Positions 1 to 47,966 of a DNA stretch of 64,000 nucleotides are shown piece after piece. Source of the DNA: Haplodiscus bocki (taxonomy: Eukaryota); contig OZ296649.1 in NCBI GenBank assembly GCA_965655095.1, positions 87,792,001-87,856,000 of the forward strand, given 5' to 3'. Each line of letters begins with the position of its first letter. The first letter of the stretch is position 1. The notes under the pieces are model-generated. The model was not told the DNA's origin, made no database searches, and was given only the letters and a program-made list of their open reading frames with translations. Position numbers and translations under genes: made by a program.

Positions 1-2498
1 TTTAGCACATCTAAACCTCGCAATTGGGTGCTGTTAGGCTCCGGAGGCCTCTCACTAAAGATGTTGAAGGTGTACCAAAAGGTTCAACATGTTTGGCAAG
101 AAAAAAACTGCGTTTTGAGCCAAAATACGTCAAAAAAATGGGTTGTTTGGGGCACTAAGGTCTGCACTACAACGCTTCGGAATTTTACTGTAAGACCCCA
201 ATGATGGTCAAACTCACAGAATAGCCTTCCAATTGGATGTGCAAGATGCTGCGTTTTTAAAACAGGCAACTTTATGCGGAAAAAAATTGCTTTCTGAGCC
301 GGAAAACGTCAAAAAATTGGGTTTTTTGGGGTCCTCAGGTCTGCACTAAAACGATCGGGAATTTTACTGTAAGACCCTGATGATGCTCAAACCCACTGGA
401 TAGCCGCCCAATTGGATTCGCAAGGTGTGGCGCCAAGAAAAGAGAACCTTACAGATAAAAATCGCTTTTTGAGCCAAAAAACTTCGAAAAAAAACTGGTT
501 TTCTAGTTTCTTTAGACATTACCCCAGTGAAACCCTTCGTAAATTCACTGTACTGCTCCGATCGCGCTAAAACTCAGAGGATAGCCACTAATTTATTAGT
601 AGAACGTGTTCCTGCAATAAAAAGGTAAATTACTAATCATTCAACTCGAAGAAATTTGCAAAGAGGAACTTTAGGGCTAAGCCTATTCGCTCCTTAAAAA
701 TGAATCTGCAGGCAAGACCGCAACAACGTCTAAACGTTCTCAAACCCATATATTGAGTAAATATATCCTTTATAAAGATATTCAGGTATCTGCATGCAAA
801 TTTTCAGCTCAAAAACATCATTTTTCGTGACGTACGAAAGCTTCCAATTTGGACAAGTTGGCCCGCTAGGGCCCTTTTGGAAATGCGTGTTTTAGCACAT
901 CTAAACCTCGCAATTGGGTGCTGTTAGGCTCCGGAGGCCTCTCACTAAAGATGTTGAGGGTGTACCAAAGGTTTCAACATGTTTGAGTAGAAAAAACTGC
1001 GTTTTGAGCCAAAATACGTCAGAAAATTGGCTTTTTCGGGGCACTGAGGTATGCACTAGAACGCTTCGAAATTTACTGTAAGACCACAATGATGGTCAAA
1101 CTCACAGGACAGCCTTCCAAAAGGATGCGCAAGGTGATGCGATTTTAAAATAGGCAACTTTATTTCGAAAAAAAAATAGCGTTTTGAGCCGGAAAACGTC
1201 AAAAAAATGATTTTTTTGGGTCCTAAGGTCTGCACTAAGACGCTTCGGAATACTACTGTATGGCTCGAACAATGATTAAACTCGCAAGATAGGCGCCCAA
1301 TTAGTTGCACAAGGTGCATAAAAAAAGGCTACTTTTGTCAGAAAAAAAATACGTTTTGGGGCAAAAAACCTCGAAAAAACGGGTTTTCTGACATTAGCCC
1401 AGTAATATCTTCGTAATTTTGCTGTATTGCTCCGATCGCGCTCAAACTCACAAGATAGCCACTTTTTTGATATTAGAACGTGTTCCTGCAATAAAAAGGT
1501 AAATTACTAATCATACAACTGGGGGAAATTTGCAAAGAGGAACTTTAGTGCTAAGCCGGCTACCTATTCGCTCTTTAAAAATGAATCTGCGGGCAAGACC
1601 GCAACGACGTCTAAACAATCTCAAAACCATAAATTGAGTAAATATATCCTTTATAAAGATATTCAGGTATCTGCATGCAAATTTTCAGCTCAAAAACATC
1701 ATTTTTCGTGACGTACGAAAGCTTCCAATTTGGACAAGTTGGCCCGCTAGGGACCTTTTGGAAATGCGTGTTTTAACACATCTAAACCTCGCAGTTGGGT
1801 GCTGTTAGGCTCCGGATACCTCTCACCAACGATGTTGAAGGTGTACCAAAAATTTCAACATGTTTGAGTAGAAAACTGCGCTTTGAGCCAAAATACGTAA
1901 AAAAAATGGGTTTTTTGGGGCACTCAGATCTGCACTAAAACACCTCGGAATTTTACTGTAAAGCCCCAATGATGGTCAAACTCACAGGACAGTCTCCCAA
2001 TAGGATGCGCAACGTGATGCGATTTTAAAAAAGGCAACTTTATATCGAAAAAAATTGCGTTTTGAGCCGGATAACGTCAAAAAAATGGGTTTTTTTGGGG
2101 TGCTAAGATCTGCACTAAGACGCTTCGGAATTTCACCGTATAACTCCGATGATGCTCAAACTGACAGGATAGCCACCCAAGTGGATGCGCAAGGTGTTGC
2201 AACAACAAAAAAGGCAACATTATGCAGAAAAAAATTGCGTTTTGAGCCAAAAACCGTAAAAAAATGGGTTTTTCAGGGTATTCAGGTCTACACTAAGACG
2301 CTTCGGAATTGCACCGTATTACTCCGATGATGCTCAAACTCACAAGATAGCCAGTCAAGTAGATGCGCAAGGTGTTGCAACAATAAAAAGGCAATTTTAT
2401 GCAGAAAAAAATTGCGTTCTGAGCCAAAAACCGTTAAAAAAATGGGTTTTTTGGGGTAATCAGGTCTACACTAAGACGCTTCGGAATTTCACCGTATT
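1..2498. repeat. Satellite array S1: ~179-bp monomers in ~890-bp higher-order repeats
   Basis: Monomer core AATTTTACTGTAAGACC..GATGATGCTCAAACTCAC recurs at ~181, 360, 541, 1069, 1248, 1948, 2129, 2308. HOR marker TTTAGCACATCTAAACCTCG recurs at 1, 891 and ~1772. Confidence 0.95.
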
Positions 2499-2501
2499 TC
2501 A

Positions 2502-3575
2502 CTCTTTTGTTTAATCATAAGAAAGTACCCTAAAAGTTGTGCCTTATATCAAAATTTGAGGTCAAAATTTTACAAATTCAGCTTACACCGGCTCTCTGAA
2601 TGTCACTCAAAAGGCCGAAAAAAGGTGAAAAAACGGTGTTTCTCAGGCCCGTCGCAGACCTCACTGACTCGCACCAAAGGGCTGAAAACCCACTCCGAAG
2701 ATCTTTGTTCAAAGCCACGCACAAAAAAGGAAGTTTTTGGCCCAAAAGACAGCCCGTCATGTGATTTTAGTTGTCTGAGTGAATAACCCAAGAAAAGGCA
2801 GTCGAAAACAAAGTACAGGTGCTCGTAAACCCATCCTTTTAGGCAACTGTTCCAAAAAAAGCTTCTAACTAGTTGGAACCAACAATCAGCTAGATTCTGA
2901 CACTTTTATTTGATCCTAATTGTTAAACTATGCAAATAATGATGAATTTCATTGAAAAAACACGATTTTTCACACCTTCTTCGTGTCAAGTTAAGGACCT
3001 TCTCATCAAAATCTGGGCTTCCTCAGTACAATTTCAATTTGTTCACACAAAAGTACATACAAAGCGGTGTCCACTCCGTTTTTTTTGACAACCTTCGGGC
3101 TTCTGGTCGAAAAATACGGCTCTCCTGATTTTTTCCAAAAATACACTCAAATATCTTTTGGTGATCGTTTCGGTGCAAAAAACAGCATTTTTTTCGACGC
3201 GCGCAAAATAGATTAAGCCGATCATTCAACCATATAGTAGAGCAAATTTTGACGACTTTTTAATGTCCAAATGCAAAAATTCGAGAAATGGCGCGCTCTT
3301 GAAAAACGCCAAAAAAAGCGATTTTCGCGATTTCTGGCTACTTTGGGACTGCCATATTCGATTTTGATGATAGTTAGGTCTCTTTTGTTTAATTCATGTG
3401 AAAGTCCACCAAAAGTTGTACCTTATGTCAACCTTATGTCAAATTTTCAGGTCAAAATACTAAAAATCAGCTTAGACGGCCCCTTCGAATTTCACTCAAA
3501 ATACCAAAAAAAGGTGAAACAAAGGTGTTTTTCAGGGCAGTCGCAAATCTTACTGAAACATTCCAAGGAGCTCAA
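2502..3575 (+). repeat. Diverged ~180-bp direct repeat pair (about 2502-2690 and 3380-3575)
   Basis: CTCTTTTGTTTAAT..GAAAGT..AAAAGTTGT.CCTTAT.TCAA..AGGTCAAAAT..TCAGCTTA..TCACTCAAAA..AAAAAAGGTGAAA occurs twice, ~880 bp apart. Confidence 0.8.
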
Positions 3576-4660
3576 AAACAACCAAAAGTCTCATCTGCCG
3601 GATGGCTAACGGGTTTTATAGCCTTGAAAGTACTGGTCAACTGTTTGGGCCAAAATTGACACCTGTGAACACTCATTTTGAAAAAACACTCACTTTTTGA
3701 CATTCAAATTGAAATTACTTCTCACATATTTGAGTTACTGCAAAGTAAATCATGTTGTCAAAAACGCTTTCGCAAGTGCTTTTGAACGTTAGGAGAGTGT
3801 TTTTACCGTCAGACAACGACAAAACCCCTTTTTTGTGACTGTGTTTTCGAGGTAGTCCCAAAAACAGCCATTTTAGCCATCTGACTGAAAATGACTTCCC
3901 TCACTCGTTCCAGTTCACCCAGAAGCTTTATTTGCGGTGCCCATCAGAATCCTCCATCATTTGGAGCTGAATTCTTGAGTTGGCAAGTTGCTAAAGTTTT
4001 GACCTATGAAATCTTGGTATACCTCATCGTAAAAAAGTTTAAATGGAATAACTCGATGCACAGTAATGGGGAAGTAGGGCGGTTTTCAGTGACTCAAAAT
4101 ATAGTGGATAGAGATTATTCATGCCAGAAATTAGCACGCTACTGGCAAGAATCGCGAAATGCGGGACCTTCAAATATGGTCAAAAAACACGGTTTTCAGA
4201 AGTAGAGCATTTTTGGGGGTGAAAAAAAAGATATGTTCCACTTGGGTTACCATCATCAAAATTTACCAGCAGGTTCCCCATGGATAGTAATTGCCGGGAA
4301 TGTGCTATTTATTGGTATCCCAAGCTTGAATGAGGAGAAAGAAACGCCGGGAGACATGAAAAAGCGACTTTTGGCGATTTTCCGGACCTTCTCACGACAA
4401 CCGCATGTGAAATAGGGGTCTCAAACTTTGCCAAAAAATACCGCTGCTAGTGGCCATCTTGCGTGCTAAAAACAAAAAGGCTCAACTAAAAGAGAAAAAA
4501 ATCGATTTTTGACTCAAAACTGTTAATCGGATCAAAAAGTTGCTGTTTCCGACCAAAATGTCGGGCGACCGCAATTTTTGAGAAAAAAACATCTGATTTG
4601 AAATCGGTTTTCTTTTCTGGGGTCCTGGGCACCTTTTCAAAGGCTTAACAGAATCAAAAA

Positions 4661-4747
4661 TCCGGTAACCAGTAAATTTAGCACTCAAAAATGTTTTTTT
4701 TCCGGCAACCAAAAATCAATGAAATTATCGTTTGTTTTCCAGTAACC
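4661..4747 (+). promoter_or_regulatory. Three TCCRGYAACC motifs upstream of the structured RNA region; candidate promoter elements
   Basis: TCCGGTAACC 4661-4670, TCCGGCAACC 4701-4710 and TCCAGTAACC 4738-4747 (spacing 40 and 37 bp). Function is inferred from position only. Confidence 0.35.
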
Positions 4748-5080
4748 CCGAGCCGATTTACGACCGGCTGGTCTCTTTGGTTGCTCTTTTTTTTCATTGA
4801 GGACGTTTTGCGCGTCCAGTAGGACGGTTAAAACCAGTTGTAGGCGTTTTGCGAACCGTTTCTGCTTTAGCCACCTAGCCACTACTGTTTGAGTCACTGC
4901 ATGGTGTGCCGAAAAGAACATCTTCGGAGGTTCTCTTTGGCATCACCTAGTGTGTTGTATGTTTGTTTGCGAGGGTGCTCCAGTCTCCTTTTTTCTCTCA
5001 CCTTTTTCCCGTTTTTTCGTTAGTTTCCCTTTCCTTCCCCTGTCGTGTGTTTGCTAGGCGGACTGCAAAAATGCAGAGAA
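4748..5080 (+). other. Structured, ETS-like leader upstream of the 18S-derived RNA
   Basis: Hairpin GGACG-ttttgcg-CGTCC (4801-4817), a long hairpin 4902-4947 capped by a C(UUCG)G tetraloop, and a pyrimidine tract at ~4983-5041. Confidence 0.45.
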
Positions 5081-6122
5081 GATCTGAAAAAGATCCCGCT
5101 GGTGGGGGCTACTTGCACCACCGGTCGCAGCTTGAAATCAAAAAGTTTGATGTTTTATGGTAGAGATGGCCTCATTCTCTTACCTTCTAGGTCAGAGAGT
5201 GATTGCATCTAGACCACAAAGCCTGAAAATCTTTGATGTCAAGCCCCAAAATAACCTTAGTAGGAATAAGCATAGGGCCTACTTTCATAAACTCTCTCTC
5301 AGCGCCGTGGTTGGGGCAGGGAGATTACACGTTTCGGCGTTGAAGCTCCCTGTCGGTCAGGGTATCGGTTACCTGTTTGAGAGTTTATGAGGGTGCGGTG
5401 CAGAGCTTATCTCAGGAGAAATTGGTGCTGTGAGCCAGACACACCCAATTTCATCTGGAGGGCGATGCAACGTTTGGGCCGCGGTATATTCATCCAGAGC
5501 TGCACCTGGGACCTGCCTTGTTCTGCTGTCCCGGCTTGAGCGGCGCTTGTACACTTCCCAGGAACTGAAAGGCGAACTGATTTGTGAAGCATTGATCTAG
5601 CATTCAATATCATAATGCATACTGCTTGTCATAGGAGTCATTGTCAACTGAAAACCAAAACTGTACAAATGCTATTTGAAGTTAAGAGTTCTTGGAAGTG
5701 TATAGGTTAGCTTGGGTTCCCTAGGGTGTTTCGCCATTTCCTCGGAAATGGGTTAACACTGGGCTGTGTGAACAAGTTGATGTAAGTATGGTTGGTGTCT
5801 GGCACAGCTTGCGTTCTGCTCTGCAGAACACCCCCAGTCTGAGGGTCTCCGGAAGGGCTCCGACTTGCCGGGTTAGTCAAGAAGGAGAACGAGGCTTTCT
5901 TCAAATGCAAGCTGTCACCCTAACCTGATGGTTAGCCGCGCAACCTGAGGGAGGGAGACACTCCTTGGTGAGTGGGGCCATACGACATCGTCGTGGGCTG
6001 GCTCTGGCGTAAGCGTGTCTCATACGCTTTTGATGATGAATTCCTAGGACCAAGTGCTAAAGACGGGTCGCGCCCGAACTCACAAAGTGCAATTGCCTAC
6101 GCCTTTTGACGGGGTCTTTTTT
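5081..6122 (+). ncRNA. Highly diverged, shortened (~1.04 kb) 18S/SSU rRNA-derived structured RNA lacking the 3' minor (decoding) domain
   Basis: Collinear matches to remembered eukaryotic 18S: ATCTGaaaaaGATCCcGCtgGTgG 5082-5105 (TATCTGGTTGATCCTGCCAGTAG); ATGGTAGagaTGGCCT 5157-5172; aAGCCTGAaAA 5219-5229; TGGAGGGC..GCCGCGGTA 5456-5486 (h18); GgCGAACT..TGtGAAGCATT 5571-5593; GGTTGGTGtcTGGC 5790-5803; TTGcCgGGTTAgTC 5865-5878; GAACGAGgC 5887-5895; CGCGCaACCTGAgGGAG 5937-5953; CGTCGTG 5989-5995; GCTtTTGAtGAtGAATTCCTAG 6026-6047; GCCtTTTG-AC 6101-6110. Many intact stems with G-U pairs favour the + strand. Ends in T6 at 6117-6122. Confidence 0.75.
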
Positions 6123-6144
6123 GCCCCCAAAAGTGGGAAAAACT

Positions 6145-6186
6145 TCGGTATACCTGGAAAAAATTAACGTCGGTATACCTGGAAAA
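6145..6186 (+). terminator. Twin 17-bp direct repeats just downstream of the T6 run; candidate terminator or protein-binding boxes
   Basis: TCGGTATACCTGGAAAA at 6145-6161 and 6170-6186, each containing the palindrome GGTATACC. Role inferred by analogy to Pol I terminator layout. Confidence 0.4.
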
Positions 6187-7630
6187 CCGAGTTTCGGATC
6201 CCGAAGTTTGATGCTTTTGAAAACAAAGTAAAACTGTAGAAACTCCTCAATTTTTGGAAATCTTTGGAGCCTAGGGATTTGCAGAGTTTGTCTTTTTGCG
6301 ATAGTTGTGGAATGAACAAAAAAAATTAGACAAAAATCAACAAAAATTTTGCAAAAACCACCGCCAATATACGGTTGTGTGGGATCTTTTGCCTAAACTA
6401 ATCTGTAGTATTAGCTTGATTTAAAACTGCTGTTTTTTGGAACTCAGTGTCAACCCAAGGATCGGACATAAATTATTATGGGGCTTCTAAACACTCGTTA
6501 CAACAAAAAAAACTAATTTTGGGAGAAGATTTGAGCGTTTGAACAAGTCTGAATTGCGGGTTTCAGGTCCAACTAAGTAACGTCACTAAAAGCTTTTAAA
6601 ACAAGTGACAGTTCCTAGTTTTTTGGAAATCTTCTGTGCTTGTTCAGGCATTAAAGCTGTCAAAAAGCAATTTGTTTCAAAATCCTACACAAAAAATATT
6701 AAATTCGTGAAAAAACTGCTGAAACCAGCGTTCAAACTCTGTTATCTCGGAAATTTTGCGTTAACTTTTTTAGTACTTTGGAATTACACTAACCAGCTGG
6801 TTTTTTGCTTCCAACGCAAATCCAGAGACTTGAACTAACGTGTAAAGGTGCTTTTTGGTACCCTACAAGAAAAAAATGTATTGATAAAAAAATTTCAACG
6901 TTTGAGCAAGTCTGAATTGCGGGTTTCAGGTCCAACTAAATAAAATCGCTAAAAACTTCTAAAACAAGTGATAACTCCTGGTTTTTTGGAAATCTTCTGT
7001 GCTTATGAATGTATAATAGCTGTCAAAAAGAAACTCGTTGCAAAAAACTTGACAAAACTTATTAGATTCCTGAAAAAACAGCTGAAGCCAGTGTTCAAAC
7101 TCTGTTATCTCGGAACTTTTGCGTTATCTTTTTCAGTACTTTGGAACTTTGGAATTACACTAACCAGCTGGTTTTTTTGCTTCCAACGCAAATCCGGAGA
7201 CTTGAACTAACGTGTAAGGGTGCTTTTTGGTACCCTACAAGAAAAAAAAAGTATTGATAAAAAAATATCAACGTTTGAGCAAGTCTGAATTGCGGGCTAC
7301 AGGTCCAACTAAATAACAACGCTAAAAACTTCTATAACAAGTGATAACTCCTGGTTTTTTGGGAATCTTCTGTGCCTATTAAGGTACAAAAGCTGTCGAA
7401 AAGAAATTCGTTGCAAAATACTTACAAAAAATATTAAATTCGTGAAAAAAAACTGCTGAAGCCAGTGTTCAAACTCTGTTATCTCGGAACTTTTGCGTCA
7501 ATGTTTTCAGTACTTCGGAATTAGGCTAACCAGCTGGTTTTTTGCTTCCAACGCAAGTCCGGAGACTAGAACTAACGTGTGAGGACGCTTTTGGTACCCT
7601 ACAAGAAAAAAGTATTGATTTCAACGTTTC
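6187..7630 (+). repeat. Tandem ~360-bp repeats: three conserved units plus a diverged first unit
   Basis: CGTTTGARCAAGTCTGAATTGCGGG at ~6537, 6899 and 7272. Units share TTCAAACTCTGTTATCTCGGAA and TTTTGGTACCCTACAAGAAAAAA. Confidence 0.9.
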
Positions 7631-7930
7631 AGAATTCAATAAAAAAAATAACTTTTTTGTTTTTTTCCTGCAGTAATTGAGAAAACATAGCTGTGAAAAG
7701 CAAAACGAAGAGAATAGCAGCAAACACGGACAAAAAGAAAAAAGAAGTTTGACTTAGATCAGCGTTCAAATGAGCAAATGAGATTTAATGAAAAAAAAAT
7801 ATGCGTCGAATCTGTTGGAAAATTATGGTGGAAGACATTCAAAAGCAGTGTTGCTTCCTGAGTTTTTGCTTGTCCAGCTTTACTGATCTCCAACTTGTGA
7901 AATCGAAAAACATCTGCACCAGCTATAATC

Positions 7931-10900
7931 ATGCCTCGTGAAAACTTCAGAATTCTTCCCTATACCTCTGAAGTGTACTCCTTCAACGAAGTTGATGAGA
8001 ACGATGAACGCTGCGGTTAGGTCCAATTCCATTCCTTCTCTTCCGCCAATAAAGAGCAAAAGATTCTTTCGATGTTTTAAATTTCATTTGCATAATAGGC
8101 AAACTATTTTAAGACCTCTTCAACTCTGAATTAACTGTAATGTTTACCAAAAAGAATCACACGAAATGCTGAAATAGCTTCTGAAAAGAACATTTTTGGT
8201 TGTATGGAAATCTTTAGGAGCCCCCCTTGTGGTACCACCGTCAAGGAACATGTCACCCGATGATGCCATCATCGACTCCGAGAAAAGATCCAAGCGCGGT
8301 CAAAAGAATGTGGAGGAATGGCAATATCTGTACCAAGACCAGAAAGGTTTTGAAAAAGCCTTCATTAGCCAGGAGGAAGGCTATGGACTGGTGGCAACGC
8401 GCTTCTTTGAGAAGGGCTCCTTTCTATTGTTTTACAGAGGACGACGGATCAGTAGACGCGAAGCTGACTTGAAAATAGCCGTAAGATTCGAGGAAGCTTT
8501 GATTTGATTACTTTCGCAAAGCATATGAATAAAAACTGTTGCAAAAATGATTTTTTTAGGAGGGAAAAAACGAATACATCTATTCAGGTGAGAAGAGTAA
8601 TCTTCTCATTGATGCTTCCGATGAGGACTCTGGGCCTGCGCGTTTCATGAACAACGCAAATAAAAAAGCGCACGTGAAGGCTGGGCCATATAGAGATGGC
8701 GGTTAGTTTCATTTATCTAAATTATTTAAACTAGGAGTAAAAAACGTAAAATTATGTTTACGTTGTAGCTGGAGTTGAACGTGCGTTTCACAGCATTGCG
8801 CGACATAAACAAGGGAGAAGAGTTGGTTTACGACTACAATGGCGTAGGTCTCTTTTGGCGAGTCAAGAACCAAAACAGGGTTTTTTGAATAAAATTACTG
8901 ATTTGAAATCTTTGATGAATTAATCATTCAAATATTCCAGGGATATCAAGCCAAAATATCTGGAAGTGTCCCAACCTGAAACGTAAATTTCCCCGTTTTT
9001 TAAATTATTAATGAAACATCGCAAGCAGTATCTTTCCAGACTGAACTTTTTCCAAGACTCCTATTCAAAGTACATGCGTCTTTAGTACTAAGTAAGTTTT
9101 CTCTTGCAGTCGAAATTACGAAAGCAAGTCGAAGTTCAATTCTTCGTGTGTTTTCTCTTCCAGAGCCCAGGCGGTCCGAAAATTGATAAGCGAAGACGGA
9201 GAAAGTTCCCAAGCAGAAAATGAAGAACGCTTTCAAATTTACACTAAGAAGAAGCAATCATGCACAGAAACCCGTAAGCAAAATACTTTTCCGGATAAAA
9301 CAGTATTATAGAGCTGTCATATTCAATACTTTCTGTGTTTTAGGGGTTTTGCAGGACATAACCAACAATGAGAGCGAAAACTTCGTTGAAACTGTTTACC
9401 TTTCTGACAGTTAGACATTTTTTTCTTTGACTGACCTGAAAAAGCAATTTGGTCACGAACGAGATTTTTTCCCCTTTTTAGCAAGTCTGCCGGAAGACAG
9501 TCTCTACAGAGTTCCAGATGAGCCCATGTCGAATGTGTTTTTTTGAAGTACAAGCGGCCATCGAAGGCAAGGACAAACTGATTGCTCAAAGACAGTTAAA
9601 TTCCCAACGGTAACAATCACTCATCTCTTTCCTTGCAAGGCAAAGCATGTAGAGACGCATCCTGATTTGCAGCCTGAAAAACCTCGAGAATGAACGTCGC
9701 AAGAAAATGAAAGCTAGATCGGAAATGGGTTTTTCGCAACCCGAACCAACAACCGAAAACAATGCCAGAGCCAGGGAGGAAAGCGACTGCGAACAGTAAG
9801 TCACAAAAACAAAATGTTACCTGGGAAAAATTGAAAATTTTAGAAAAAACCAGCACTCAATCGACAGACACACTCCGCCCCAACAACCTGTCAGCTTCTC
9901 TAGGCATAAGTAACCATTTCTGGTAGGCATTTTTGATTATAATGTTGCTAGAGACCAATACGTAAAAACGCCTTTTCTCCAGCGAACCTTCGAAATCAAA
10001 AAAGAGGCACGAGATGTACAGCCCCTTCTTCATAGCGAGCACAGAAGATGAGCCAAAAATTCACAGCAAACGTGGTCAAAAGATGAAGCCACGACGAAAA
10101 CAAGGGAAGTGTCTGCGAGTTTTCAAGACGAAAAACTCCCGAAACTTAACTTCTCCAAACATAGAAAACAGGTTCTTTCGAGTTTCGTTGAAAAGTTGAT
10201 ATTTTACTAACAAACCTAAATAACTAAACGGATTTTTCCAGTCCGCATGCAAAAATTGCAACCTGCGACGAAGAACACAAAACGCCAACTGCTCTGAAAC
10301 AGCATATAAATCGGTTTGGTGTCTAAATTGTCTCACGTAAAATATTCTAAAATTTCTATTTGAGATACAGTTGGTTTTTTTTCACAGACCGCTTGCTGAC
10401 GTGACGAATCATCCAGCCCTAGACAAAGCTGCTGTCGATAGCCCGGAGTGAGTTTTTTAAATCATTATATTAAATAATTCCCCTTCTAGCGACAGTTTGA
10501 AGCACTTGCACGATTTTTAAGATATGAGGACTTTGAGAGGGACAGGAGAGAGAAAGTGAAGTCGAAAAAACCTTTGCCAGCTGAACTTCTTCCAATTCCC
10601 CAACTCAGTGAGAGTGAAGCCCTTCTTGATTGTGCCGAGTGAGTACTTATATCGACAAACTTCTTTTGCTTCCAGCCAGAAGCAACATGAGTTGAACCAA
10701 ACCAAAATTTCGATTCAGTTAGTCGCCGAAACCCAACGTAACTCACTTGACGACAGAAGAATGGAGTGAAATGATGGAGAAGCTTACTTGCTTGCCAGTT
10801 TGGACAGAGAATAGGTTCGTGTGAAACGGAGTTTAACCTCGGAAAAATGAAGCTTTTCATTGGACAGGCAAGCTGCAAATCTAATGTGCTTCAATTTTTT

Positions 10901-13900
10901 AAGGTGCAAGAAGAAAGCAATGCAAGTGGATTCTGATTACTTACAGGAATCGAGCTCAACGGAAAGTGAAATAGGTTCTGGCTGTGACGAATTTACAACG
11001 GACGTGGACCACAGTCCCTCCGAGCTTGGAAACTCAACCAAAGGCTTGGTCCCTCAACAACAGGGAAAAAGCAAAAAGTATATTGCGATCGTTTTTGAAT
11101 GTTTTCACTGCCTAAATTCTTATGTTTCGAAAGTTTATTCTGTGATGGCTAGAAGAAAAAGTAAACATGCTGTACAAATTAAGAAAGAGGACTCGCAAAA
11201 AAATTACCGGAAAAATCGATTTCGCAAAGAAATATTTTTCGATCGCTAATGAATGTTTTCACTGCAAATTTTTTTTTGTTTTCTGAAACTTCGTTCTTTG
11301 ATGCCTAGAAGGAAGACTAAACATCCTGTACAAATTAAGAAAACGGGCTGTCAAAAAAAGCTGAGGGTGAGTAATAAAAAGCACAAAATTAACGTTTTCG
11401 TTCTACAAGTTCCCCAAATGAATTCGAAAGTGTTTGTTTGTGATTTCTGTTGCCGCATGGTTTGTCACAAAAAAATACACAACAAGAGCATTAAGCGCCA
11501 CGTCCAGAGAAATCAACAGCAAATCTGGAAAAACAACGTTGTCGATGTTGTGGTCAAATTGTCGCTCTTTTTCTCCAGAGAGCAGAGGGGCAAAAAGTAT
11601 GTGTGCGCAGTTGAAGACTGCCTGAAAACAACTTCTAGAAAAAAGGAGCACCGGTGCCACTTGCAGGACCTTGTGCTGGTCAAAAAGAGAAGTGACCTGC
11701 CTCTGAACATCTCCAATATAATTTTCCCACCACCAATAGACGGTGAGATGCTAAATTGCTTCACTATGTTTTGCAAATTTGGAAGACAACAGATGTGTAG
11801 AAGACTTAGTTATAATTTTTTTCTTCTGAAACAACAGGACTTTAAAATCGAAATAAATATGTGTTGTTTTCCAGACGCCTCCAATGAGTTTGGGAAGTTT
11901 ACAAATTGGGGAGTTTGGGAATTGGGCAAATTGCCGACTTTAGAAAAATCATTGACGGCTACATTGCCAACCGAACTCAACTCTTCAAGCGCGGTGCTGA
12001 ACGTTATAACGAGAAGGCGCTCAACCTGCAGGTCAAGAGGATTAAGGAGTTCATCTTGGCATCGGATGAACTCACCAATGCCTCAGTTTTCCCCGTTTTC
12101 TTGGCCAGCCTTCAAAATGTGCACGCGCCCAAAAGCTGTCAAAACGTAGCCAACAATATCAAAGAGTTCCTGAACTTGGTTGAGCGTTTTGGGTCTGACG
12201 GACCAGGAATGAGGACAGCAGTCGAACCTGAAAGCATTAAGGCACAACTTACCCCCTATAAGCAAACTCTCGATAAACCTGCCCGCCAGTGGCGGAACAC
12301 CCAAGTCCTGCTTGATTTTCAAGGAATGCCTTCTCAGACTGAGCTGAAGGAAGTACGATCAAAAGTCATCAACTTGACTGAAACTTTGATAGAAAAGGGC
12401 TTGAACAGAGGACATTTAGTAGATGAGGACTTTTGATGCTTCTGAAGGGTTTGGTCTGCCTTGTGGTAATGAGAAACGCATGCAGAGTTTCCTCTGGAAT
12501 TTACATCAAGAACGAGCATTACATGTTTCGTTGTAAAGGCCCACAATGGAAGAACTATAAAAGTCCACTCTGCCCTCCGAACCAGATTGTGAGGAAACCG
12601 TAAGATTTTTCGAACTAACTTTTTGCCATTAATGATATTGAACAACTTGCCACCAGTTGCTTATTGCAAAATCAGTTTTTGGGCAAACTTAGGTCTCGAA
12701 CACGGGAAATTGTTTATGGGGGAGTTTTTTACGAAAAGAGACAGTTTTGTGTCAGGGAAAGTCACTGAGCAAATTCAAACGTAACGCAAAGTTTGAACAT
12801 TTTTTCAGTGATGAGAAGAAGTGGCAGGCAATTGAACGGTGGACAGAAGAAGGGAAGGAGAGCAATAAAAACTATGACACAGAAGCCCTAACTGTTCTCT
12901 CGCTCTCAACCGAAGAAGTTGCAATCTTCGACCGCTTCGCAAAACTTAAGAAAGAACTGGGACTGGGACGTTTGAAAAAAATATTACTTCAATTTTTTCA
13001 AAAACCCAGAAGGGAAGCGGCCTTACATTTCCCTTAAAAAATTCGATCGAGATCTCGGAAAGCAGTTAAATATTACAATCAGATTTAATTCAACCATCTT
13101 CCGAAAGAAAATGCAGACTCTTTGGAGTCAAAAAGTCCAGCATCCCAAGGACTTGCAGACGATTAATACTGCAATGGGCCAGGGTTGGTGGACGGGTTTG
13201 ATGCATTACACTTTCCAAAACAAATATACTGCCAGTGAATTCGTCTGTCAAACTGTGGAGCTGAACGTGAGTCCTTTTCCTCAGCGATAGAAAAAAATTA
13301 ACCAACTAGTTAAGGTAATTTGAGAAATAATAAAATATATTTTTTCTAGAATTATTTAATGGTATCTTACATTGTATACTAAATTTCCCAAAAAATTAAA
13401 TTAAAAAATAAGAAAGCAAAAAATTTGAAATATATGTTTTAGGACAATGACTATCTGCCGGAGATTGGCGGCCCTCAAACTTCCAGCTTACACAGAACCA
13501 TCACAACTGTAACTTAAAAGCTGACACTATAATTGATTAGCAAATATTCGATTTTTTTTTGTGTTCTCCAAAGTAATTATTTTTGTTCCAGAGCTCTGTC
13601 GCACCTCTTGAAAACTCTTCCGACGACTGTTCCGAAGATCAGTGCAGCAATGGCTCACAAAGTGAAGATCTGATGGTATTGCTTTTGTAAAAGAACAAAT
13701 GAAATTTAGTTGAGCTTAAAGCCTTCGATACTACTATATTTTAGCAGGAAGATGAGACAACAGATTTTGGAACCGTACAGTCCACAGATCAAGTGGGTGT
13801 GATCGACTTTTCTGAAAAGTTTGCTCAAATTTTGGATCAGATATTGAATTTTCTGAACTTTTACACAATTCAACATCATAAATTGCTAACTGCACCAATT

Positions 13901-14425
13901 CCGGATTCAGAAAAGGAATGCTCGGAAAGTTCCGACGAGAGTGAAGAGGTTATACTTCGCTCATTTGATTTTGTTCTCCAGTTGAGTTGACGTCATTGAG
14001 AATTATCTTTTTTCCCAGAAAAAGCCCGCGCCAAAAAAGAGGAGATACTTCGGTGGCTCAAAGCAGAGTGTTCAAATGGAGGCCGAATTTACTTTGGTAC
14101 TGGTTTTAAATTTCACATTTACTGAAGTAAAATCTTCACTTATGGCTCATCATGTCTTCAAACTTTTTTGCAGATCAGTGAGTCAAGCGCAGCCCTGGCA
14201 ACTGAGTATTTGAAAAACAGAGGGAATTGAGGAAGAGAAACTGCCCCAATTCCAGATGAAATGATCGCGATGGTTGTGGACCTCCTCATGAAGGAATTGA
14301 GAAACGTGCACTTTATTCCGGGAGAGATCCAAAAAATCTATTTCAGAAACCACAAGTACGAAACACTGAGAAATCAACTAAGACTCCTCCGCATTTGGCG
14401 GGAGAGAGGTTACCAGTCCGGTTGA
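7931..14425 (+). pseudogene. Multi-exon SET-domain + tyrosine recombinase locus, copy 1 (one gene or two adjacent genes; frameshifted)
   Basis: Phase-compatible exons 7931-8015, 8218-8480 and 8560-8701, then ~8769-8880 (phase of this junction unresolved). They give SET motifs GYGLVATRFFEKGSFLLFYRG, IDASDEDSGPARFMNN and FTALRDINKGEELVYDY. A C-x4-C..HRCH zinc-finger-like motif lies at ~11600. YR motifs: NACR ~12475-12486, STIFRKK ~13091-13111, AMGQGWWTGLMHY ~13171-13209. Lesions include a small duplication at ~11900 and a missing T at ~12431. Last exon ends ..RERGYQSG* at 14425. Confidence 0.75.
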
Positions 14426-14939
14426 TTTGTACACGGATAACTGTGAAACCAAGAAAGAAACAATGATGTTGCTAGCGTATTATTTGAGAATTTTCAATAT
14501 TTTATGGACTTGTCGTATCTTGCTTTGTGATTTGTAAATTTTCATTAATATATAAACTTGTCGAACTTTGCCTTACCTTTCCATTGGAACAAAAAAAAAA
14601 TGAAAGCTCAGAAGAGAAAACAGAAAAGAACAGCGAGACAGAGAATAAAAAAAACAATCATTGCATTGCGTTCTTGCTGAGAGAAAAAAGAAATTGATAA
14701 GGAAGAAACAAAAAAAAATTGGGGCCCAGATAGCGTGTGTTCTCGTCGCGGCCCTGGGCATCATTCTTCTCAACAGTAGTGGCAAGACCGCTATCAATTT
14801 TTTCTTGTTTCGCTTTCATCCAGTTTCAATCTCAGGCAACTAACCGTTAATATTGCACTATGATATTAAGGATTAGACAAGTAATTATTCTTCCGTGCCT
14901 TCAAAATAGGTGTAGCAAAACTGAAAAGCTCATCTATAA

Positions 14940-16458
14940 GGGAGAAAAATACGTTCTCACCCAAAAACAAACGTCCGAGAAAAAGATTTTTTTCTTGGGG
15001 TTATCAGGGATTACTTGACTGAAACCTTTCGTAATTTTGCTGTACAGCTCCGATTAGGCTCAAACACACAGGATAGCCGCTTAATTCAACGCACAACGTG
15101 AAGGGGTTGCAATGATAGAAAAGCAACTTTATGAATAAAAAAAATTTCAGCCAAAAAAATGGGTCCTCAGGTCTGCACTTAAACGCTTCGCAACTTTACT
15201 GTATGACTTCGATGATGCTCAAACTCACAGAATAACCGCCCAAGTAGATCCGCAAGGTGTTGCGGCATTAAAAATGGCAACTTTACCAAAAACCAATTGC
15301 GTTTTGAGCCGGAAAACGTCAAAAAATGGGTTTTTTGGGGTTCTCACGTCTGCAATAAAACGCTTCGGATTATTACTGTCATACCCTGATTATGCTCAAA
15401 CTCACTGGCTAGCCGCTTAATTGGATGCGCAAGCTGTTGCGACAATAAAAAACAAACCCTTGTGAGAAGAAATTGCTTTATGAGCCGAAAAACTTCGAAA
15501 AAAAACTGGTTTTCTGGGGTCTACTGATATTACCCGAGTGAAACCCTTCGTAATCTCGCTGCACTGCTACGCTCACGCTCAAATTCACAAGATAGCCGCT
15601 AATTTGATAGTGAAACGTGTGCCAGCAATAAAAAAGGTAACTTACTGATCATTCACCTGGAAAAATTTGCAAAGAACGCTTTAGGGCTAAGCCGGTACCT
15701 ATTCGCTCCTTAAAAATGAATCTGCGCGCAAGACCGCAACAACGTCTAAACAACCTCAAAACCATAAATTGAGTAAATAGATCTTTTATAAAGATGTTCA
15801 GGTATATGCATGCAGACTTTCAGCTCAAAAACATCATTTTTCGTGACGTACGAAAGCTTCCAATTTGGACAAGTTGGCCCATTATGGGTCCTTTTGTAAA
15901 TGCGTGTTTTACCACATCTAAACCTCGCAATTGGGTGCTCTTACGCTCCGGAGACCTCTCACTAAAGATGTTGAAGGTGTTCCAAAGGGTTCAACATGTT
16001 TGAGTAGAAAAAAACTGCGTTTTGAGCCAAAATTCGTCAAAAAAGATGGGTTGTTTGGGGCACTAAGGTCTGCACTAAAACGCTTCGGAATTTCATCGTA
16101 TAACTCCGATGATGCTCAAACTGACAGGATAGCAACCCAAGTAGATGCGCAAGGTGTTGCAACAATAAAAAAGGCAACTTTATGGAGAAAAAAATTGCGT
16201 TTTGAGCCAAAAACCGTAAAAAAATGGGTTTTTCAGGGTATTCAGGTCTACACTAAGACGCTTCGGAATTGCACCGTATTACTCCGATGATGCTCAAACT
16301 CACAAGATAGCCAGTCAAGTAGATGCGCAAGGTGTTGCAACAATAAAAAGGCAATTTTATGCAGAAAAAAATTGCGTTCTGAGCCAAAAACCGTTAAAAA
16401 AATGGGTTTTTTGGGGTAATCAGGTCTACACTAAGACGCTTCGGAATTTCACCGTATT
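14940..16458. repeat. Satellite array S2 (same 179-bp family)
   Basis: Monomer and HOR spacer motifs present. 16090-16570 reproduces 2130-2610. Confidence 0.9.
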
Positions 16459-17122
16459 TCACTCTTTTGTTTAATCATAAGAAAGTACCCTAAAAGTTGT
16501 GCCTTATATCAAAATTTGAGGTCAAAATTTTACAAATTCAGCTTACACCGGCTCTCTGAATGTCACTCAATGTACAAAAGCTGTCAAAAAGAAATTCGTT
16601 GCAAAATACTTGACAAAAAGTATTAAATTCGTGAAAAAAAACAGCTGAAGCCAGTGTTCAAACTCTGTTATCTCGGAACTTTTGCGTCAACTTTTTCAGT
16701 AATTCGGAATTAGGCTAACCAGCTGGTTTTTTGCTTCCAACGCAAGTCCGGAGACTAGAACTAACGTGTGAGGACGCTTTTGGTACCCTACAAGAAAAAA
16801 GTGTATTGATTTCAACGTTTCAGAATTCAAAAAAAAATTAACTTTTTTTTTGGTTTTTTTCTGCAGTAATTGAGGAAAAATAGCTGTGAAAAGCAAAACG
16901 AAGAGAATAGCAGCAAACACGGACAAAAAGAAAAATGAAGTTTGACTTAGATCAGCGTTCAAATGAGCAAATGAGATTTAATGAAAAAAAATATGCGTCG
17001 AATCTGTTGGAAAATTATGGTGGAAGACATTCAAAAGCAGTGTTGTTTCCAGAGTTTCTGCTTGTCAAGCTTTACTGATCTCCAACTTGTGAAATCGAAA
17101 AACATCTGCACCAGCTATAATC

Positions 17123-20100
17123 ATGCCTCGTGAAAACTTCAAAGTTCTTCCCTATACCTCTGAAGAGTACTCCTTCAACGAAGTTGATGAGAACGATGAA
17201 CGCTGCGGTTAGGTCCAATTCCATTCCTTCTCTTCCGCCAATAAAGAGGAAAAGATTCTTTGGATGTTTTAAATTTCATTTCCATAAAAGGCAAACTATT
17301 TTAAGACCTCTTCAACTCTGAATTAACTGTAATGTTTACCAAAAGAATCACACGAAATGCTGAAATAGCTTCTGAAAAGAACATTTTTGGTTGTATGGAA
17401 ATCTTTAGGAGCCCCCCTTGTGGTACCACCCTCAAGGAACATGTCACCCGATGATGCCATCATCGACTCCGAGAAAAGATCCAAGCGCGGTCAAAAGAAT
17501 GTGGAGGAATAGCAATATCTGAACCAAGACCAGGAATGTTTTGAAAAAGCCTTCATTAGCCAGGAGAAAGGCTATGGACTGGTGGCAACGCGCTTCTTTG
17601 AGAAGGGCTCCTCTCTATTGTTTTACAGAGGACGACGGATCAGTAGACGCGAAGCTGACTTGAAAATAGCCGTAAGATTCGAGGAAGCTTTGATTTGATT
17701 ACTTTCGCAAAGCATATGAATAAAAACTGTTGCAAAAATGATTTTTTTAGGAGGGAAAAAACGAATACATCTATTCAGGTGAGAAGAGTAATCTTCTCAT
17801 TGATGCTTCCGATGAGGACTCTGGGCCTGCGCGTTTCATGAACAACGCAAATAAAAAAGCGCACGTGAAGGCTGGGCCATATAGAGATGGCGGTTAGTTT
17901 CATTTATCTAAATTATTTAAACTAGGAGTAAAAAACGTAAAATTATGTTTACGTTGTAGCTGGAGTTGAACGTGCGTTTCACAGCATTGCGCGACATAAA
18001 CAAGGGAGAAGAGTTGGTTTACGACTACAATGGCGTAGGTCTCTTTTGGCGAGTCAAGAACCAAAACAGGGTTTTTTGAATAAAATTACTGATTTGAAAT
18101 CTTTGATGAATTAATCATTCAAATATTCCAGGGATATCAAGCCAAAATATCTGGAAGTGTCCCAACCTGAAACGTAAATTTCCCCGTTTTTTAAATTATT
18201 AATGAAACATCGCAAGCAGTATCTTTCCAGACTGAACTTTTTCCAAGACTCCTATTCAAAGTACATGCGTCTTTAGTACTAAGTAAGTTTTCTCTTGCAG
18301 TCGAAATTACGAAAGCAAGTCGAAGTTCAACTCTTCGTGTGTTTTCTATTCCAGAGCCAAGGCGGTCCGAAAATTGATACGCGAAGACGGAGAAAGTTCC
18401 CAAGCAGAAAATGAAGAACGCTTTCAAATTTGCACTAAGAAAAAGCAATCATGCACAAGAAGCCCGTAAGCAAAATACTTTTCCGGATAAAACAGTATTA
18501 TAGAGCTGTCATATTCAATACTTTCTGTGTTTTAGGGGTTTTGCAGGACATAACCAACAATGAGAGCGAAAACTTCGTTGAAACTGTTTACCTTTCTGAC
18601 AGTTAGACATTTTTTTCTTTGACTGACCTGAAAAAGCAATTTGGTCACGAACGAGATTTTTTCCCCTTTTTAGCAAGTCTGCCGGAAGACAGTCTCTACA
18701 GAGTTCCAGATGAGCCCATGTCGAATGTGTTTTTTTGAAGTACAAGCGGCTATCGAAGGCAAGGACAAACTGATTGCTCAAAGACAGTTAAATTCCCAAC
18801 GGTAACAATCACTCATCTCTTTCCTTGCAAGGCAAAGCATGTAGAGACGCATCCTGATTTGCAGCCTGAAAAACCTCGAGAATGAACGTCGCAAGAAAAT
18901 GAAAGCTAGATCGGAAATGGGTTTTTCGCAACCCGAACCAACAACCGAAAACAATGCCAGAGCCAGGGAGGAAAGCGACTGCGAACAGTAAGTCACAAAA
19001 ACAAAATGTTACCTGGGAAAAATTGAAAATTTTAGAAAAAACCAGCACTCAATCGACAGACACACTCCGCCCCAACAACCTGTCAGCTTCTCTAGGCATA
19101 AGTAACCATTTCTGGTAGGCATTTTTGATTATAATGTTGCTAGAGACCAATACGTAAAAACGCCTTTTCTCCAGCGAACCTTCGAAATCAAAAAAGAGGC
19201 ACGAGATGTACAGCCCCTTCTTCATAGCGAGCACAGAAGATGAGCCAAAAATTCACAGCAAACGTGGTCAAAAGATGAAGCCACGACTAAAACAAGGGAA
19301 GTGTTTGCGAGTTTTCCAGAAGAAAAACTCCTGAAACTTACCGTCTCCAAACATAGAAAACAGGTTCTTTCGAATTTCGTTGAAAAGTTGATATTTTAAT
19401 AACAAACCCAATTAACAAAACGGATTTTTCCAGTCCACATGGACAAATTGCAACCTGCGACGCAGAACCCAAAACGCCAACTGCTCTGAAACAGCATATC
19501 AATCGGTTTGGTGTCTAAATTATCTAACGTATAATATTCTAAAGTTCTAAAGTTTCTATTTGAGATACAGTTGGTTTTTTTCACAGACCGCTTGCTGACG
19601 TGACGAATCATCCAGCCCTAGACAATGCTGCTGTCGATAGCCCGGAGTGAGTTTTTTAAATCATTATATTATATAACTCCCCTTCTAGCGACAGTTTGAA
19701 GCACTTTCACGATTTTTAAGATATGAGGACTTTGAGAGGGACAGGAGAGAGAAAGTGATGTCGAAAAAACCTTTGCCAGCTGAACTTCTCCCATTTCCCC
19801 AACTCAGTGAGAGTGAAGCCCTTCTTGATTGTGCCGAGTGAGTACTTATATCGACAAACTTCTTTTGATTCCAGCCAGAAGCAACATGAGTTGCACCAAA
19901 CCAAAATTTCGTTTCAGTTAGTCGCCGAATCCCAACATAACTCACTTGACGACAGAAGAATGGAGTGAAATGATGGAGAGGCTTACTTGCTTGCCAGTTG
20001 GGACAGAGAATAGGTTCGTGTGAAACGGAGTTAAACCTCGGAAAAATGAAGCTTTTCATCGGAAAGGCAAGCTGCAAATCTATTGTGCTTCAATTTTTTA

Positions 20101-23100
20101 AGGTCCAAGAAGAAAGCAATGCAAGTGGATTCTGAATACTTACAGGAATCGAGCTCAACGGAAAGTGAAATAAGTTCTGGCTGTGACGAATTTACAACGG
20201 ACGTGGACCACAGTCCCTCCGAGCTTGGAAACCCAACCAAAGGCTTGGTCCCTCAACAACAGGGAAAAAGCAAAAAGTATATTGCGATCGTTTTTGAAGG
20301 TTTTCACTGCCTAAATTCTTATGTCTCGAAAGTTTATTCTTTGATGGCTACAAGAAAAAGTAAATATGCAGTACAAATCAAGAAAGAGGACTTGCAAAAA
20401 AATTACCGGAAAAATCGATTTCTCAAAGAAATATTTTTCGATCGGTAATGAATGTTTTCACTGGAATTTTTTTGTTTTCTGAAACTTCGTTCTTTGATGC
20501 CTAGAAGCAAGACTAAACATCATGTACAAATTAAGAAAACGGGCTGTCAAAAAAAGCTGAGGGTGAGTATTAAAAACCACAAAATTAACGTTTTCATTCT
20601 ACAAGTTCCCCAAATGATTTCGAAAGTGTTTGTTTCAGTGATTTCTGTTGCCGCATGGTTTGTCACAAAAATACACAACAAGAGCATTAAGCGCCACGTC
20701 CAGAGAAATCAACAGCAAATCTGGAAAAACAACGTTGTCGATCTTGTGGTCAAGTTGTCGCTCTCTTTCTCCAGAGAGCAGAGGGGCAAAAAGTATGTGT
20801 GCGCAGTTGAAGACAGCCTGAAAACAACTTCCAGAAAAAAGGAGCACCGATGCCACCTGCAGGACCTTGTGCTGGTCAAAAAGAGAAGTGACCTGCCTCT
20901 GAACATCTCCAATATAATTTTCCTACCTCCAATAGACGATGAGATGCTAAATTGCTTCACTATGTTTTGCAACATTTGGAAGACAACAGACGTGTAGAAG
21001 ACTTAGTTATAATTTTTTTCTTCTGAAACAACAGGACTTTAAAATCGAAATAAATATGTGTTGTTTTCCAGACGCCTCCAATGAGTTTGGGAAGTTTGCG
21101 CAAATTGCCGACTTTAGAAAAATCATTGACGGCTACATTGCCAACCGAACTCAACTCTTCAAGCGCGGTGCTGAACGTTATAACGAGAAGGCGCTCAACC
21201 TGCAGGTCAAGAGGATTAAGGAGTTCATCTTGGCATCGGATGAACTCACCAATGCCTCAGTTTTCCCCGTTTTCTTGGCCAGCCTTCAAAATGTGCACGC
21301 GCCCAAAAGCTGTCAAAACGTAGCCAACAATATCAAAGAGTTCCTGAACTTGGTTGAGCGTTTTGGGTCTGACGGACCAGGAATGAGGACAGCAGTCGAA
21401 CCTGAAAGCATTAAGGCACAACTTACCCCCTATAAGCAAACTCTCGATAAACCTGCCCGCCAGTGGCGGAACACCCAAGTCCTGCTTGATTTTCAAGGAA
21501 TGCCTTCTCAGACTGAGCTGAAGGAAGTACGATCAAAAGTCATCAACTTGACTGAAACTTTGATAGAAAAGGGCTTGAACAGAGGACATTTAGTAGATGA
21601 GGACTTTTGATGCTTCTGAAGGGTTTGGTCTGCCTTGTGGTAATGAGAAACGCATGCAGAGTTTCCTCTGGAATTTACATCAAGAACGAGCATTACATGT
21701 TTCGTTGTAAAGGCCCACAATGGAAGAACTATAAAAGTCCACTCTGCCCTCCGAACCAGATTGTGAGGAAACCGTAAGATTTTTCGAACTAACTTTTTGC
21801 CATTAATGATATTGAACAACTTGCCACCAGTTGCTTATTGCAAAATCAGTTTTTGGGCAAACTTAGGTCTCGAACACGGGAAATTGTTTATGGGGGAGTT
21901 TTTTACGAAAAGAGACAGTTTTGTGTCAGGGAAAGTCACTGAGCAAATTCAAACGTAACGCAAAGTTTGAACATTTTTTCAGTGATGAGAAGAAGTGGCA
22001 GGCAATTGAACGGTGGACAGAAGAAGGGAAGGAGAGCAATAAAAACTATGACACAGAAGCCCTAACTGTTCTCTCGCTCTCAACCGAAGAAGTTGCAATC
22101 TTCGACCGCTTCGCAAAACTTAAGAAAGAACTGGGACTGGGACGTTTGAAAAAAATATTACTTCAATTTTTTCAAAAACCCAGAAGGGAAGCGGCCTTAC
22201 ATTTCCCTTAAAAAATTCGATCGAGATCTCGGAAAGCAGTTAAATATTACAATCAGATTTAATTCAACCATCTTCCGAAAGAAAATGCAGACTCTTTGGA
22301 GTCAAAAAGTCCAGCATCCCAAGGACTTGCAGACGATTAATACTGCAATGGGCCAGGGTTGGTGGACGGGTTTGATGCATTACACTTTCCAAAACAAATA
22401 TACTGCCAGTGAATTCGTCTGTCAAACTGTGGAGCTGAACGTGAGTCCTTTTCCTCAGCGATAGAAAAAAATTAACCAACTAGTTAAGGTAATTTGAGAA
22501 ATAATAAAATATATTTTTTCTAGAATTATTTAATGGTATCTTACATTGTATACTAAATTTCCCAAAAAATTAAATTAAAAAATAAGAAAGCAAAAAATTT
22601 GAAATATATGTTTTAGGACAATGACTATCTGCCGGAGATTGGCGGCCCTCAAACTTCCAGCTTACACAGAACCATCACAACTGTAACTTAAAAGCTGACA
22701 CTATAATTGATTAGCAAATATTCGATTTTTTTTTGTGTTCTCCAAAGTAATTATTTTTGTTCCAGAGCTCTGTCGCACCTCTTGAAAACTCTTCCGACGA
22801 CTGTTCCGAAGATCAGTGCAGCAATGGCTCACAAAGTGAAGATCTGATGGTATTGCTTTTGTAAAAGAACAAATGAAATTTAGTTGAGCTTAAAGCCTTC
22901 GATACTACTATATTTTAGCAGGAAGATGAGACAACAGATTTTGGAACCGTACAGTCCACAGATCAAGTGGGTGTGATCGACTTTTCTGAAAAGTTTGCTC
23001 AAATTTTGGATCAGATATTGAATTTTCTGAACTTTTACACAATTCAACATCATAAATTGCTAACTGCACCAATTCCGGATTCAGAAAAGGAATGCTCGGA

Positions 23101-23601
23101 AAGTTCCGACGAGAGTGAAGAGGTTATACTTCGCTCATTTGATTTTGTCCTCCAGTTGAGTTGACGTCATTGCGAATTATCTTTTTTCCCAGAAAAAGCC
23201 CGCGCCAAAAAAGAGGAGATACTTCGGTGGCTCAAAGCAGAATGTTCAAATGTAGGTCGAAGATACTTTGGTACTGGTTTTAAATTTCACATTTACTGAA
23301 GTAAAATCTTCACTTATGGCTCATCATGTCTTCAAACTTTTTTGCAGATCAGTGGGTCAAGCGCAGCCCTGGCAACTGAGTACTTGAAAAAGAGAGGGAA
23401 TTGAGGAAAAGAAACAGTGCCCCAATTCCAGATGAAATGATCGCGATGGTTGTGGACCTCCTCATGAAGGAATTGAGGAACGTGCACTTTAATCTGGGAG
23501 AGATCCACAAAATCTATTTCAGAAACCACAAGTACGAAACACTGAGAAATCAACTAAGACTCCTCCGCATTTGGCGGGAGAGAGGTTACAAGTCCGGTTG
23601 A
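17123..23601 (+). pseudogene. SET + tyrosine recombinase locus, copy 2
   Basis: Near-identical to copy 1. Has a TGG>TAG stop in the SET exon (~17510) and the same missing-T frameshift after VDEDF (~21605). Confidence 0.75.
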
Positions 23602-31480: not shown

Positions 31481-31502
31481 AATAGAAAAAAACTTAACAG
31501 CA

Positions 31503-35528: not shown

Positions 35529-35550
35529 AATAGAAAAAAACTTAACAGCA

Positions 35551-47944: not shown

Positions 47945-47966
47945 AATAGAAAAAAACTTAACAGCA

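Follow-up and report, generated by a model that had tools for sequence, protein, structure and literature searches.

The question raised by this locus is what the G+C-rich island at 5081-6122 is and whether it could work as an RNA. Within the window (the whole 64-kb stretch of DNA that was analyzed), the island reaches 49% G+C, versus 36 to 42% in the sequence around it, and has a 178-bp satellite on one side (1-2497) and a 363-bp tandem repeat on the other (6536-7611). The initial annotation had considered it a miniaturized RNA derived from 18S rRNA and exapted to another use. The explanation that we prefer, and to which we would give a probability of roughly 0.55, is that a longer segment, 4880-6125, is a degenerating copy of a multi-copy structured non-coding module, carried by a Crypton-like unit embedded in satellite DNA and presumably made as an RNA from the plus strand. 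Judging from the sequence, this module would be specific to its own family, with no detectable relation to 18S rRNA.

The limits originally drawn around the island had to be changed, since the conserved folding block begins near 4880 and extends over ca. 1.25 kb (Table 1). We found no second copy of it within the 64-kb window. The island belongs to a repeat family that is physically linked to a putative tyrosine-recombinase element, and is not a single exapted gene. Alignment of contigs to 4400-6530 at ≥80% identity yielded 169 matching contigs in each of two runs from the source organism, distributed among identity bins of 99% and above, 95 to 99%, 90 to 95% and below 90%. Many of them were internally deleted, and core and flanks were covered alike. 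The sequence is also present in coral, coral-reef and marine metagenomes and in a second named organism. Eight further full or near-full copies were recovered from public metagenome assemblies (L001, L002, L005, L008 to L011, and L012). The first of them, a 2.3-kb contig from JGI metagenomes located by an exact-word scan, is 90.5% identical over 4413-6273. Contigs L002 to L006, all from one ENA assembly, were reached via relatives of the nearby recombinase-like ORF; L004 and L006 turned out to be the window's own locus, L002 and L005 contain full core copies, and L003 has a core without 5228-5988. Another four full copies (L008 to L011), a near-full one (L012) and a fragment (L013) were found via a spurious 89-aa ORF inside the core, the last two in two other assemblies. 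As a separate observation, in L003 (3150-4822) a 220-aa recombinase-like ORF is joined directly to the left module, at the point that matches window position 4152, and this arrangement corresponds to a rearranged tandem of units.

Table 1. Features of the core and of the unit that carries it (window coordinates; alifold columns refer to the RNAalifold alignment)
Feature	Position	Strand	Basis
Structured non-coding core, ca. 1.25 kb, contains 5081-6122	4880-6125	+	Best-conserved block; 424 pairs predicted by RNAalifold
Moderately conserved upstream flank	4756-4879	+	87-97% identity over 4700-4879 in non-window copies; below the core, above the sequence past 6200
Hairpin at 5' end of core	4903-4947	+	Alifold columns 24-68; one-sided changes U-G to C-G and U-A to U-G
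Pyrimidine-rich tract that contains T5-T7 runs, predicted to be largely unpaired	4987-5046	+	Sequence; alifold columns 112-162
Long imperfect hairpin, ca. 115 nt	5130-5244	+	Reverse self-match in every copy; alifold columns 255-369
Helix TCATAAACTCTC/GAGAGTTTATGA around AGGGAG/CTCCCT hairpin	5281-5394	+	12/12 inverted repeat; alifold columns 406-526
Hairpin CAGGAGAAATTGG/CCAATTTCATCTG	5413-5457	+	Inverted repeat; alifold columns 548/587
Helix TACACTTCCCAG/CTTGGAAGTGTA closing a sub-domain	5550-5702	+	Inverted repeat; alifold columns 678-840
Helix ACAGCTTGCGTT/AATGCAAGCTGT around GTTCTGC/GCAGAAC hairpin	5804-5915	+	Inverted repeats; most invariant part of the family
Short hairpin followed by T run, 3' edge of conserved block	6098-6122	+	Sequence; alignment columns 1230-1262
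Left module: 885-bp repeat (2498-3560), second conserved block (3900-4400), core, 363-bp repeats	2498-7600	+	
363-bp tandem repeat, 2.9 copies, between core and gene-bearing part	6536-7611		
Right module: SET-like fragment (8196-8507), tyrosine-recombinase-like ORFs (11253-12149, 11906-12436)	7600-14800	+	
178-bp satellite, higher-order period about 890 bp, flanks the unit	1-2497		

The unit that carries the core is ca. 12 kb long and sits in arrays of the 178-bp satellite, in an organism present in coral and reef metagenomes. Its order is 885-bp repeats, a spacer of ca. 1.3 kb, the core, 363-bp repeats, a SET-like fragment, and the tyrosine-recombinase-like ORFs. At all seven independent loci with enough flanking sequence, recombinase-like ORFs were found 4.1 to 5.7 kb downstream of the core and on the same strand, and four of these seven had been found through the core alone. 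The 363-bp repeats come after the core in L001, L002, L005 and L008 to L011. The left module is colinear with L008 to L011 at 81 to 85% identity and, over most of its length (from window position 3135), with L002 and L005; its ORFs look spurious, with no coding signal. A unit of ca. 7.4 kb (7381-14800) is repeated twice more in the window, at 16569-23800 and 36987-44400, with 92 to 100% identity. These two further units lack 2611-7380, the 4.8-kb segment that holds the core, and the break is within a 363-bp repeat, which led us to reject a clean transposon insertion with target-site duplication as the cause; from the sequence, the gap looks like a deletion or an unequal exchange. Upstream of the second unit, 371 bp (16200-16570) match 2240-2610 at 100% identity, which means that the satellite was duplicated together with the unit.

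The nature of the putative recombinase is a lead and not a result. The SET-like fragment corresponds to the N-terminal part of the domain; its E values, 0.006 to 0.009 for the window and 0.0017 for L011, do not reach the Pfam cut-off. The downstream recombinase-like ORFs had no Pfam match. Their C-terminal ORF gave protein-language-model feature scores of 0.94 to 0.96 to the Phage_integrase and ResT/TelK clusters, and a motif (FNST.YRK...W...INRH.GH...T...Y) is conserved. AlphaFold models of the protein were poor (pLDDT of 57 and 42), and the Foldseek matches were noise. A Pfam search of 40 ORFs of at least about 70 aa, from the window unit and six other loci, found no reverse transcriptase or RNase H, the absence of which separates Crypton-type from DIRS and Ngaro elements. 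The unit looks Crypton-like because its other half carries the SET-like fragment and the putative recombinase; given the missing Pfam match and the poor structure models, the term is used here as a working label. The unit shares with Crypton-type tyrosine-recombinase transposons the putative recombinase ORFs with a box-II-like motif (RK...GH...Y), the lack of a detected reverse transcriptase, and copies embedded in tandem repeats. It differs from them in having a highly structured non-coding module of ca. 1.25 kb that is better conserved than the recombinase, and in that Pfam lends the recombinase no support. No Crypton is known to carry a module of this kind, and a full-text search of the literature retrieved no structured RNA from this class of elements.

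In a comparison with L002, conservation along the ca. 12-kb unit is highest in the core. Among the seven non-window copies, core identity was 95.3 to 98.7%, with 87 to 97% in the 5' flanks and 77 to 98% in the 3' flanks; the window core is the outlier, at 92 to 93.7% to the others. Per 100 nt, the six ENA copies were 81 to 96% identical over 3600-4899, 94 to 99.7% over 4900-6199 (99.7% at 5700-5899) and 70 to 82% past 6200. The recombinase-like ORFs have diverged far more. Between L002 and L005 they reach 47 and 33% protein identity, with no blastn match between their DNA, whereas the cores of the same loci are 95.3% identical and the left modules 88% over about 4.3 kb; compared with the recombinase-like ORFs of the window, identity is 35 to 78%. 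Core and recombinase are also discordant in which copies they relate (L005 and L009, 98.0% in the core and 38% in the recombinase C-terminal ORF; L005 and L010, 95.9 and 91%, respectively). Besides, all four combinations occur at two sites of the core, one an A/G polymorphism (alignment column 223) and the other an insertion of 6 nt (columns 458 to 463). This four-gamete pattern, together with the discordance, shows gene conversion or module shuffling between copies, and such exchange could by itself keep the cores alike without selection. The left module has a further conserved block at 3900-4400 (about 5110-5610 in L010), which is 91 to 96% identical among six copies. This block has an ORF of 70 to 76 aa, open in five copies, with changes at the three codon positions of 8:9:14; most of them alter the amino acid, so that this ORF is probably non-coding.

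Such a contrast between a well-preserved core and diverged recombinases, and the discordance between the two, are what one would see if the core were a multi-copy structured-RNA gene of the host, with repeat-rich spacers, and diverged tyrosine-recombinase elements inserted site-specifically just downstream of it. Mobile elements are known to target multi-copy RNA genes (rDNA in the case of R2, snRNA and tRNA genes in that of Dada elements), and the likeness extends to a conserved, multi-copy, RNA-like core always adjoined by diverged elements and to the signs of concerted evolution in the cores. We still regard a host gene as improbable. No core was seen without a downstream recombinase unit (seven of seven loci), nor was any tandem array made up solely of cores; many copies have deletions or are in decay. 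Moreover, unlike the known insertion targets, the core matches no known RNA family, and no element-free copies were seen.

Evidence for the module as a structured RNA comes from its folding. The inverted repeats described in the initial annotation are where it had located them (5285-5296 with 5379-5390, pairing at 12 of 12 positions; 5413-5425 with 5445-5457; 5726-5741 with 5744-5759; and a palindrome at 5817-5830). Its statement that pairing exceeds chance was also borne out. Against dinucleotide shuffles, 5089-6088 had a z score of -4.17 on the plus strand (minimum free energy, MFE, of -377 kcal/mol versus -334 ± 10) and -2.76 on the minus strand, and 4880-6130 of the window had a z score of -3.1. 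Pairing is stronger in the intact copies than the window alone revealed. The core of L010 folds with an MFE of -493 kcal/mol on the plus strand (-411 ± 9 in shuffled sequences; z = -8.9) and -404 kcal/mol on the minus strand (-347 in shuffled sequences; z = -6.4), versus z scores of -0.6 and +0.3 for the upstream and downstream flanks of the same module and -0.6 for an unrelated stretch of the window. Excess folding of this kind, limited to the element and greater on the plus strand, is what is looked for in a functional RNA. The plus strand is more stable than the minus strand by ca. 90 kcal/mol, through G-U pairs. The window copy has an MFE of -451 kcal/mol versus -487 to -496 in its paralogs, i.e., it is ca. 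40 kcal/mol less stable.

The RNAalifold consensus of eight copies predicts 424 pairs, including the 115-nt hairpin, a closing helix formed by about 4891-4970 with 6085-6112, and most of the helices named in the initial annotation. One of the latter, TCTGGA/TCCAGA, had been placed around an h18 homologue; the pairing is indeed there in the sequence, but it competes with the extended hairpin at 5413-5457, which is favored by a T/C polymorphism of the family at 5454 (G-U to G-C, 4:4). Covariation is nearly absent (double changes in 2 of the 424 pairs and a covariation term of +1.7) because the copies, at 95 to 99% identity, are too alike. In L001, the 5413-5457 hairpin has a double change, from U-A to A-U. 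Loops vary by indels and base changes around stems that remain intact, and the tip of the AGGGAG/CTCCCT hairpin has the insertion TGATGA at columns 458 to 463 in three copies. In L005, the 115-nt hairpin gave weak matches to generic miRNA precursors (E = 0.04), far under the gathering score.

Whether selection has acted on these pairs depends on the copies considered. Our first test, on the differences between the window and L001 (10 pairs broken versus 22 expected; MFE z = -5.3), was discarded as an ascertainment artefact, since the fold had been taken from the window copy and pairs already lost there were scored as unpaired. Once the folds came from other copies, this signal was gone for the private changes of the window, whose 46 to 48 private substitutions break 23 to 26 pairs, versus 23 to 25 expected. 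Being random relative to the pairs, these substitutions indicate that the window copy is decaying; the 26 private changes of L012 are likewise random. Variants among the seven non-window copies break 17 to 21 pairs, versus 22 to 30 expected. The depletion is found in the variants common to at least two copies, which break 9 to 14 pairs versus 18 to 24 expected (P ≤ 0.005 in five of seven reference folds, which are related, so that the tests are mutually non-independent), and singletons break pairs at a nearly random rate on the plus strand. On the minus strand, the test without the split into singleton and shared variants gave no depletion of pair breaking. Older changes that are constrained and recent ones that are not, and this on the plus strand only, are the expectation if the fold matters as a plus-strand RNA in the lineages that propagate. 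The proposal that helices were kept despite sequence divergence therefore stands for the family, in which shared variants spare plus-strand pairs, and falls for the window copy itself.

These results also bear on the idea that the module has no RNA function, with folding as the by-product of a cluster of inverted repeats acting at the DNA level, in recombination or replication, or of a sequence homogenized by gene conversion. Several observations suit it: the minus strand also beats its shuffles (z = -6.4), gene conversion between copies is evident, support from covariation is minimal, and private changes are random in the window copy and L012. However, it leaves aside the extra stability of the plus strand through G-U pairs and the depletion of pair breaking found there, with none in the unsplit test on the minus strand. 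Instead of a few long perfect palindromes, the core has many nested imperfect helices with variable loops, and the flanks of the same module do not share the excess folding. Altogether, we find a purely DNA-level origin of the folding rather unlikely.

Under the preferred reading, a structured module of a Crypton-like unit, the core would be a putative plus-strand RNA either made by the unit or needed by it. Such an RNA could act in cis or in trans, for propagation, expression or silencing of the unit. Selection would keep the fold in those lineages that leave descendants, gene conversion would spread it among copies, and single copies such as that of the window would then decay neutrally. Comparable cases are the structured cis-acting RNAs of mobile elements, such as retroelement leaders, recognition structures in 3' UTRs, or the omega RNAs of TnpB and Fanzor. 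They are also non-coding structures borne by an element, conserved in the propagating lineage while single copies decay. On the other hand, the module is much larger, no adjoining reverse transcriptase or RNA-guided nuclease was found, and it has no above-chance complementarity to a target or to the ends of the unit. The longest words that the core shares in complementary orientation with the satellite, the repeats and the unit ends are of 10 to 14 nt, within the range of shuffled sequences, which leaves a guide-like role without support. A more specific version can be advanced only tentatively: deeply diverged SET/tyrosine-recombinase elements of satellite arrays would have a large, so far undescribed structured RNA (ca. 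1.25 kb, z close to -9) as obligate partner, either as an RNA that the element needs for recombination, targeting, expression or silencing, or as a new multi-copy host RNA gene that is their specific target. Should the module work as an RNA, it would be the first case of a large structured RNA linked to a tyrosine-recombinase (Crypton-like) element in eukaryotes, and one with higher conservation than the enzyme of that element; it would also represent a large new family of structured RNAs. The question would then become whether such an element uses an RNA or homes to an RNA gene. If it is not transcribed, what is left is a non-coding, well-conserved segment of a repeat embedded in satellite DNA.

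The proposed origin from a miniaturized 18S rRNA, exapted as a scaffold or decoy for ribosomal proteins or processome factors, was examined with the Rfam covariance models. Scanning the whole 64-kb window with cmscan against all 4,227 Rfam families gave no small- or large-subunit (SSU or LSU) rRNA match at the gathering score, and with lax filters there was none at E ≤ 10 on 4700-6400 or on 5081-6122. Copies L001, L002, L003 and L005 were equally negative, both at the gathering score and at E ≤ 10. In total, the window and these four other loci had zero Rfam 15 matches at the gathering score, with rows at E ≤ 10 at chance level, and we rejected on these grounds an origin from 18S or any other rRNA. 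Searches of viral contigs with the 18S 5'-end pattern and with two core words gave no matches. The more than 10 ordered 18S motifs listed in the annotation are without statistical support. Chance alone is expected to give two unrelated sequences, one of 1.25 and the other of 1.8 kb, about 8 to 9 exact 9-mers in common (our own arithmetic), so a list of short mismatched motifs carries little weight. Furthermore, the quoted motifs differ among copies. The one assigned to the 18S 5' end, GATCCCGCTGG, matches it at 10 of 14 positions at 5092-5105 but reads GATCCCACTGG in four of eight copies (the segment being ...CCCACTGG... in four of the eight), and RNAalifold places it in a local hairpin (alignment columns 223 to 250). 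The h28 motif, GCCTTTTGAC, is private to the window among eight aligned copies, with GCCATTTTGGC in the seven aligned full copies. The annotation was right in that the 530 loop is incomplete and h44 and h45 are missing; from the universal core motifs, only the invariant 9-mer GCCGCGGTA is present, which matches half of the 530-loop sequence. Like 18S rRNA, its pseudogenes and orphons, the module is long, richer in G+C, multi-copy, and RNA-like with multiple helices. It differs from 18S rRNA in having no covariance-model similarity, decoding site or 3' domain, and in being linked to a mobile-element-like unit and not to ITS, 5.8S and 28S. Since no copy scanned resembles the SSU model, descent from 18S and a ribosomal scaffold or decoy role have no basis, and we judge them highly improbable.

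Some features of the core concern how an RNA might be produced from it. The upstream flank at 4756-4879 is a possible promoter candidate, and the T runs at 4987-5046 would argue against a Pol III transcript starting upstream of them. The T run at the 3' edge of the core has six T residues in the window and seven to eight in the other copies. A scan for bacterial-type promoters and terminators gave nothing informative. The window core has no ORF longer than 78 aa, and no relatives of its 77-aa ORF were found. Other candidates were discarded: coding ORFs of 89 to 161 aa in other copies (no Pfam match and odd composition), and a SINE headed by tRNA, 7SL or 5S or a ribozyme-bearing repeat (ARAGORN and Rfam both negative). 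Just past the core, at 6141-6186, there are two 21-nt direct repeats, AAC(T/G)TCGGTATACCTGGAAAA, one of which is missing in L001, and an inverted relative of them, TTTTCCAGTAACCCCGA, is located upstream of the core at 4735-4751.

The rest of the window is also rich in repeats. The satellite, with a monomer of 177 to 179 bp and a higher-order period near 890 bp, occupies 1-2497, 14800-16500, 23800-30500, 32500-34500 and 44400-46800 and takes up most of the sequence that separates the larger units. Also set within the satellite is a third unit, of ca. 2 kb, repeated in three copies (30453-32500, 34549-36500 and 46778-49000) that are 93 to 100% identical. In L008 (1-4730), the 885-bp repeat is present in at least five tandem copies, each with a 78-aa ORF call that has no family match. 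Finally, 52000-59000 is sequence unique in the window, with a strongly negative GC skew (as low as -0.33) and a G+C content that reaches 51%, and contains a 322-aa ORF (54303-55271) with a weak match to DUF4618.
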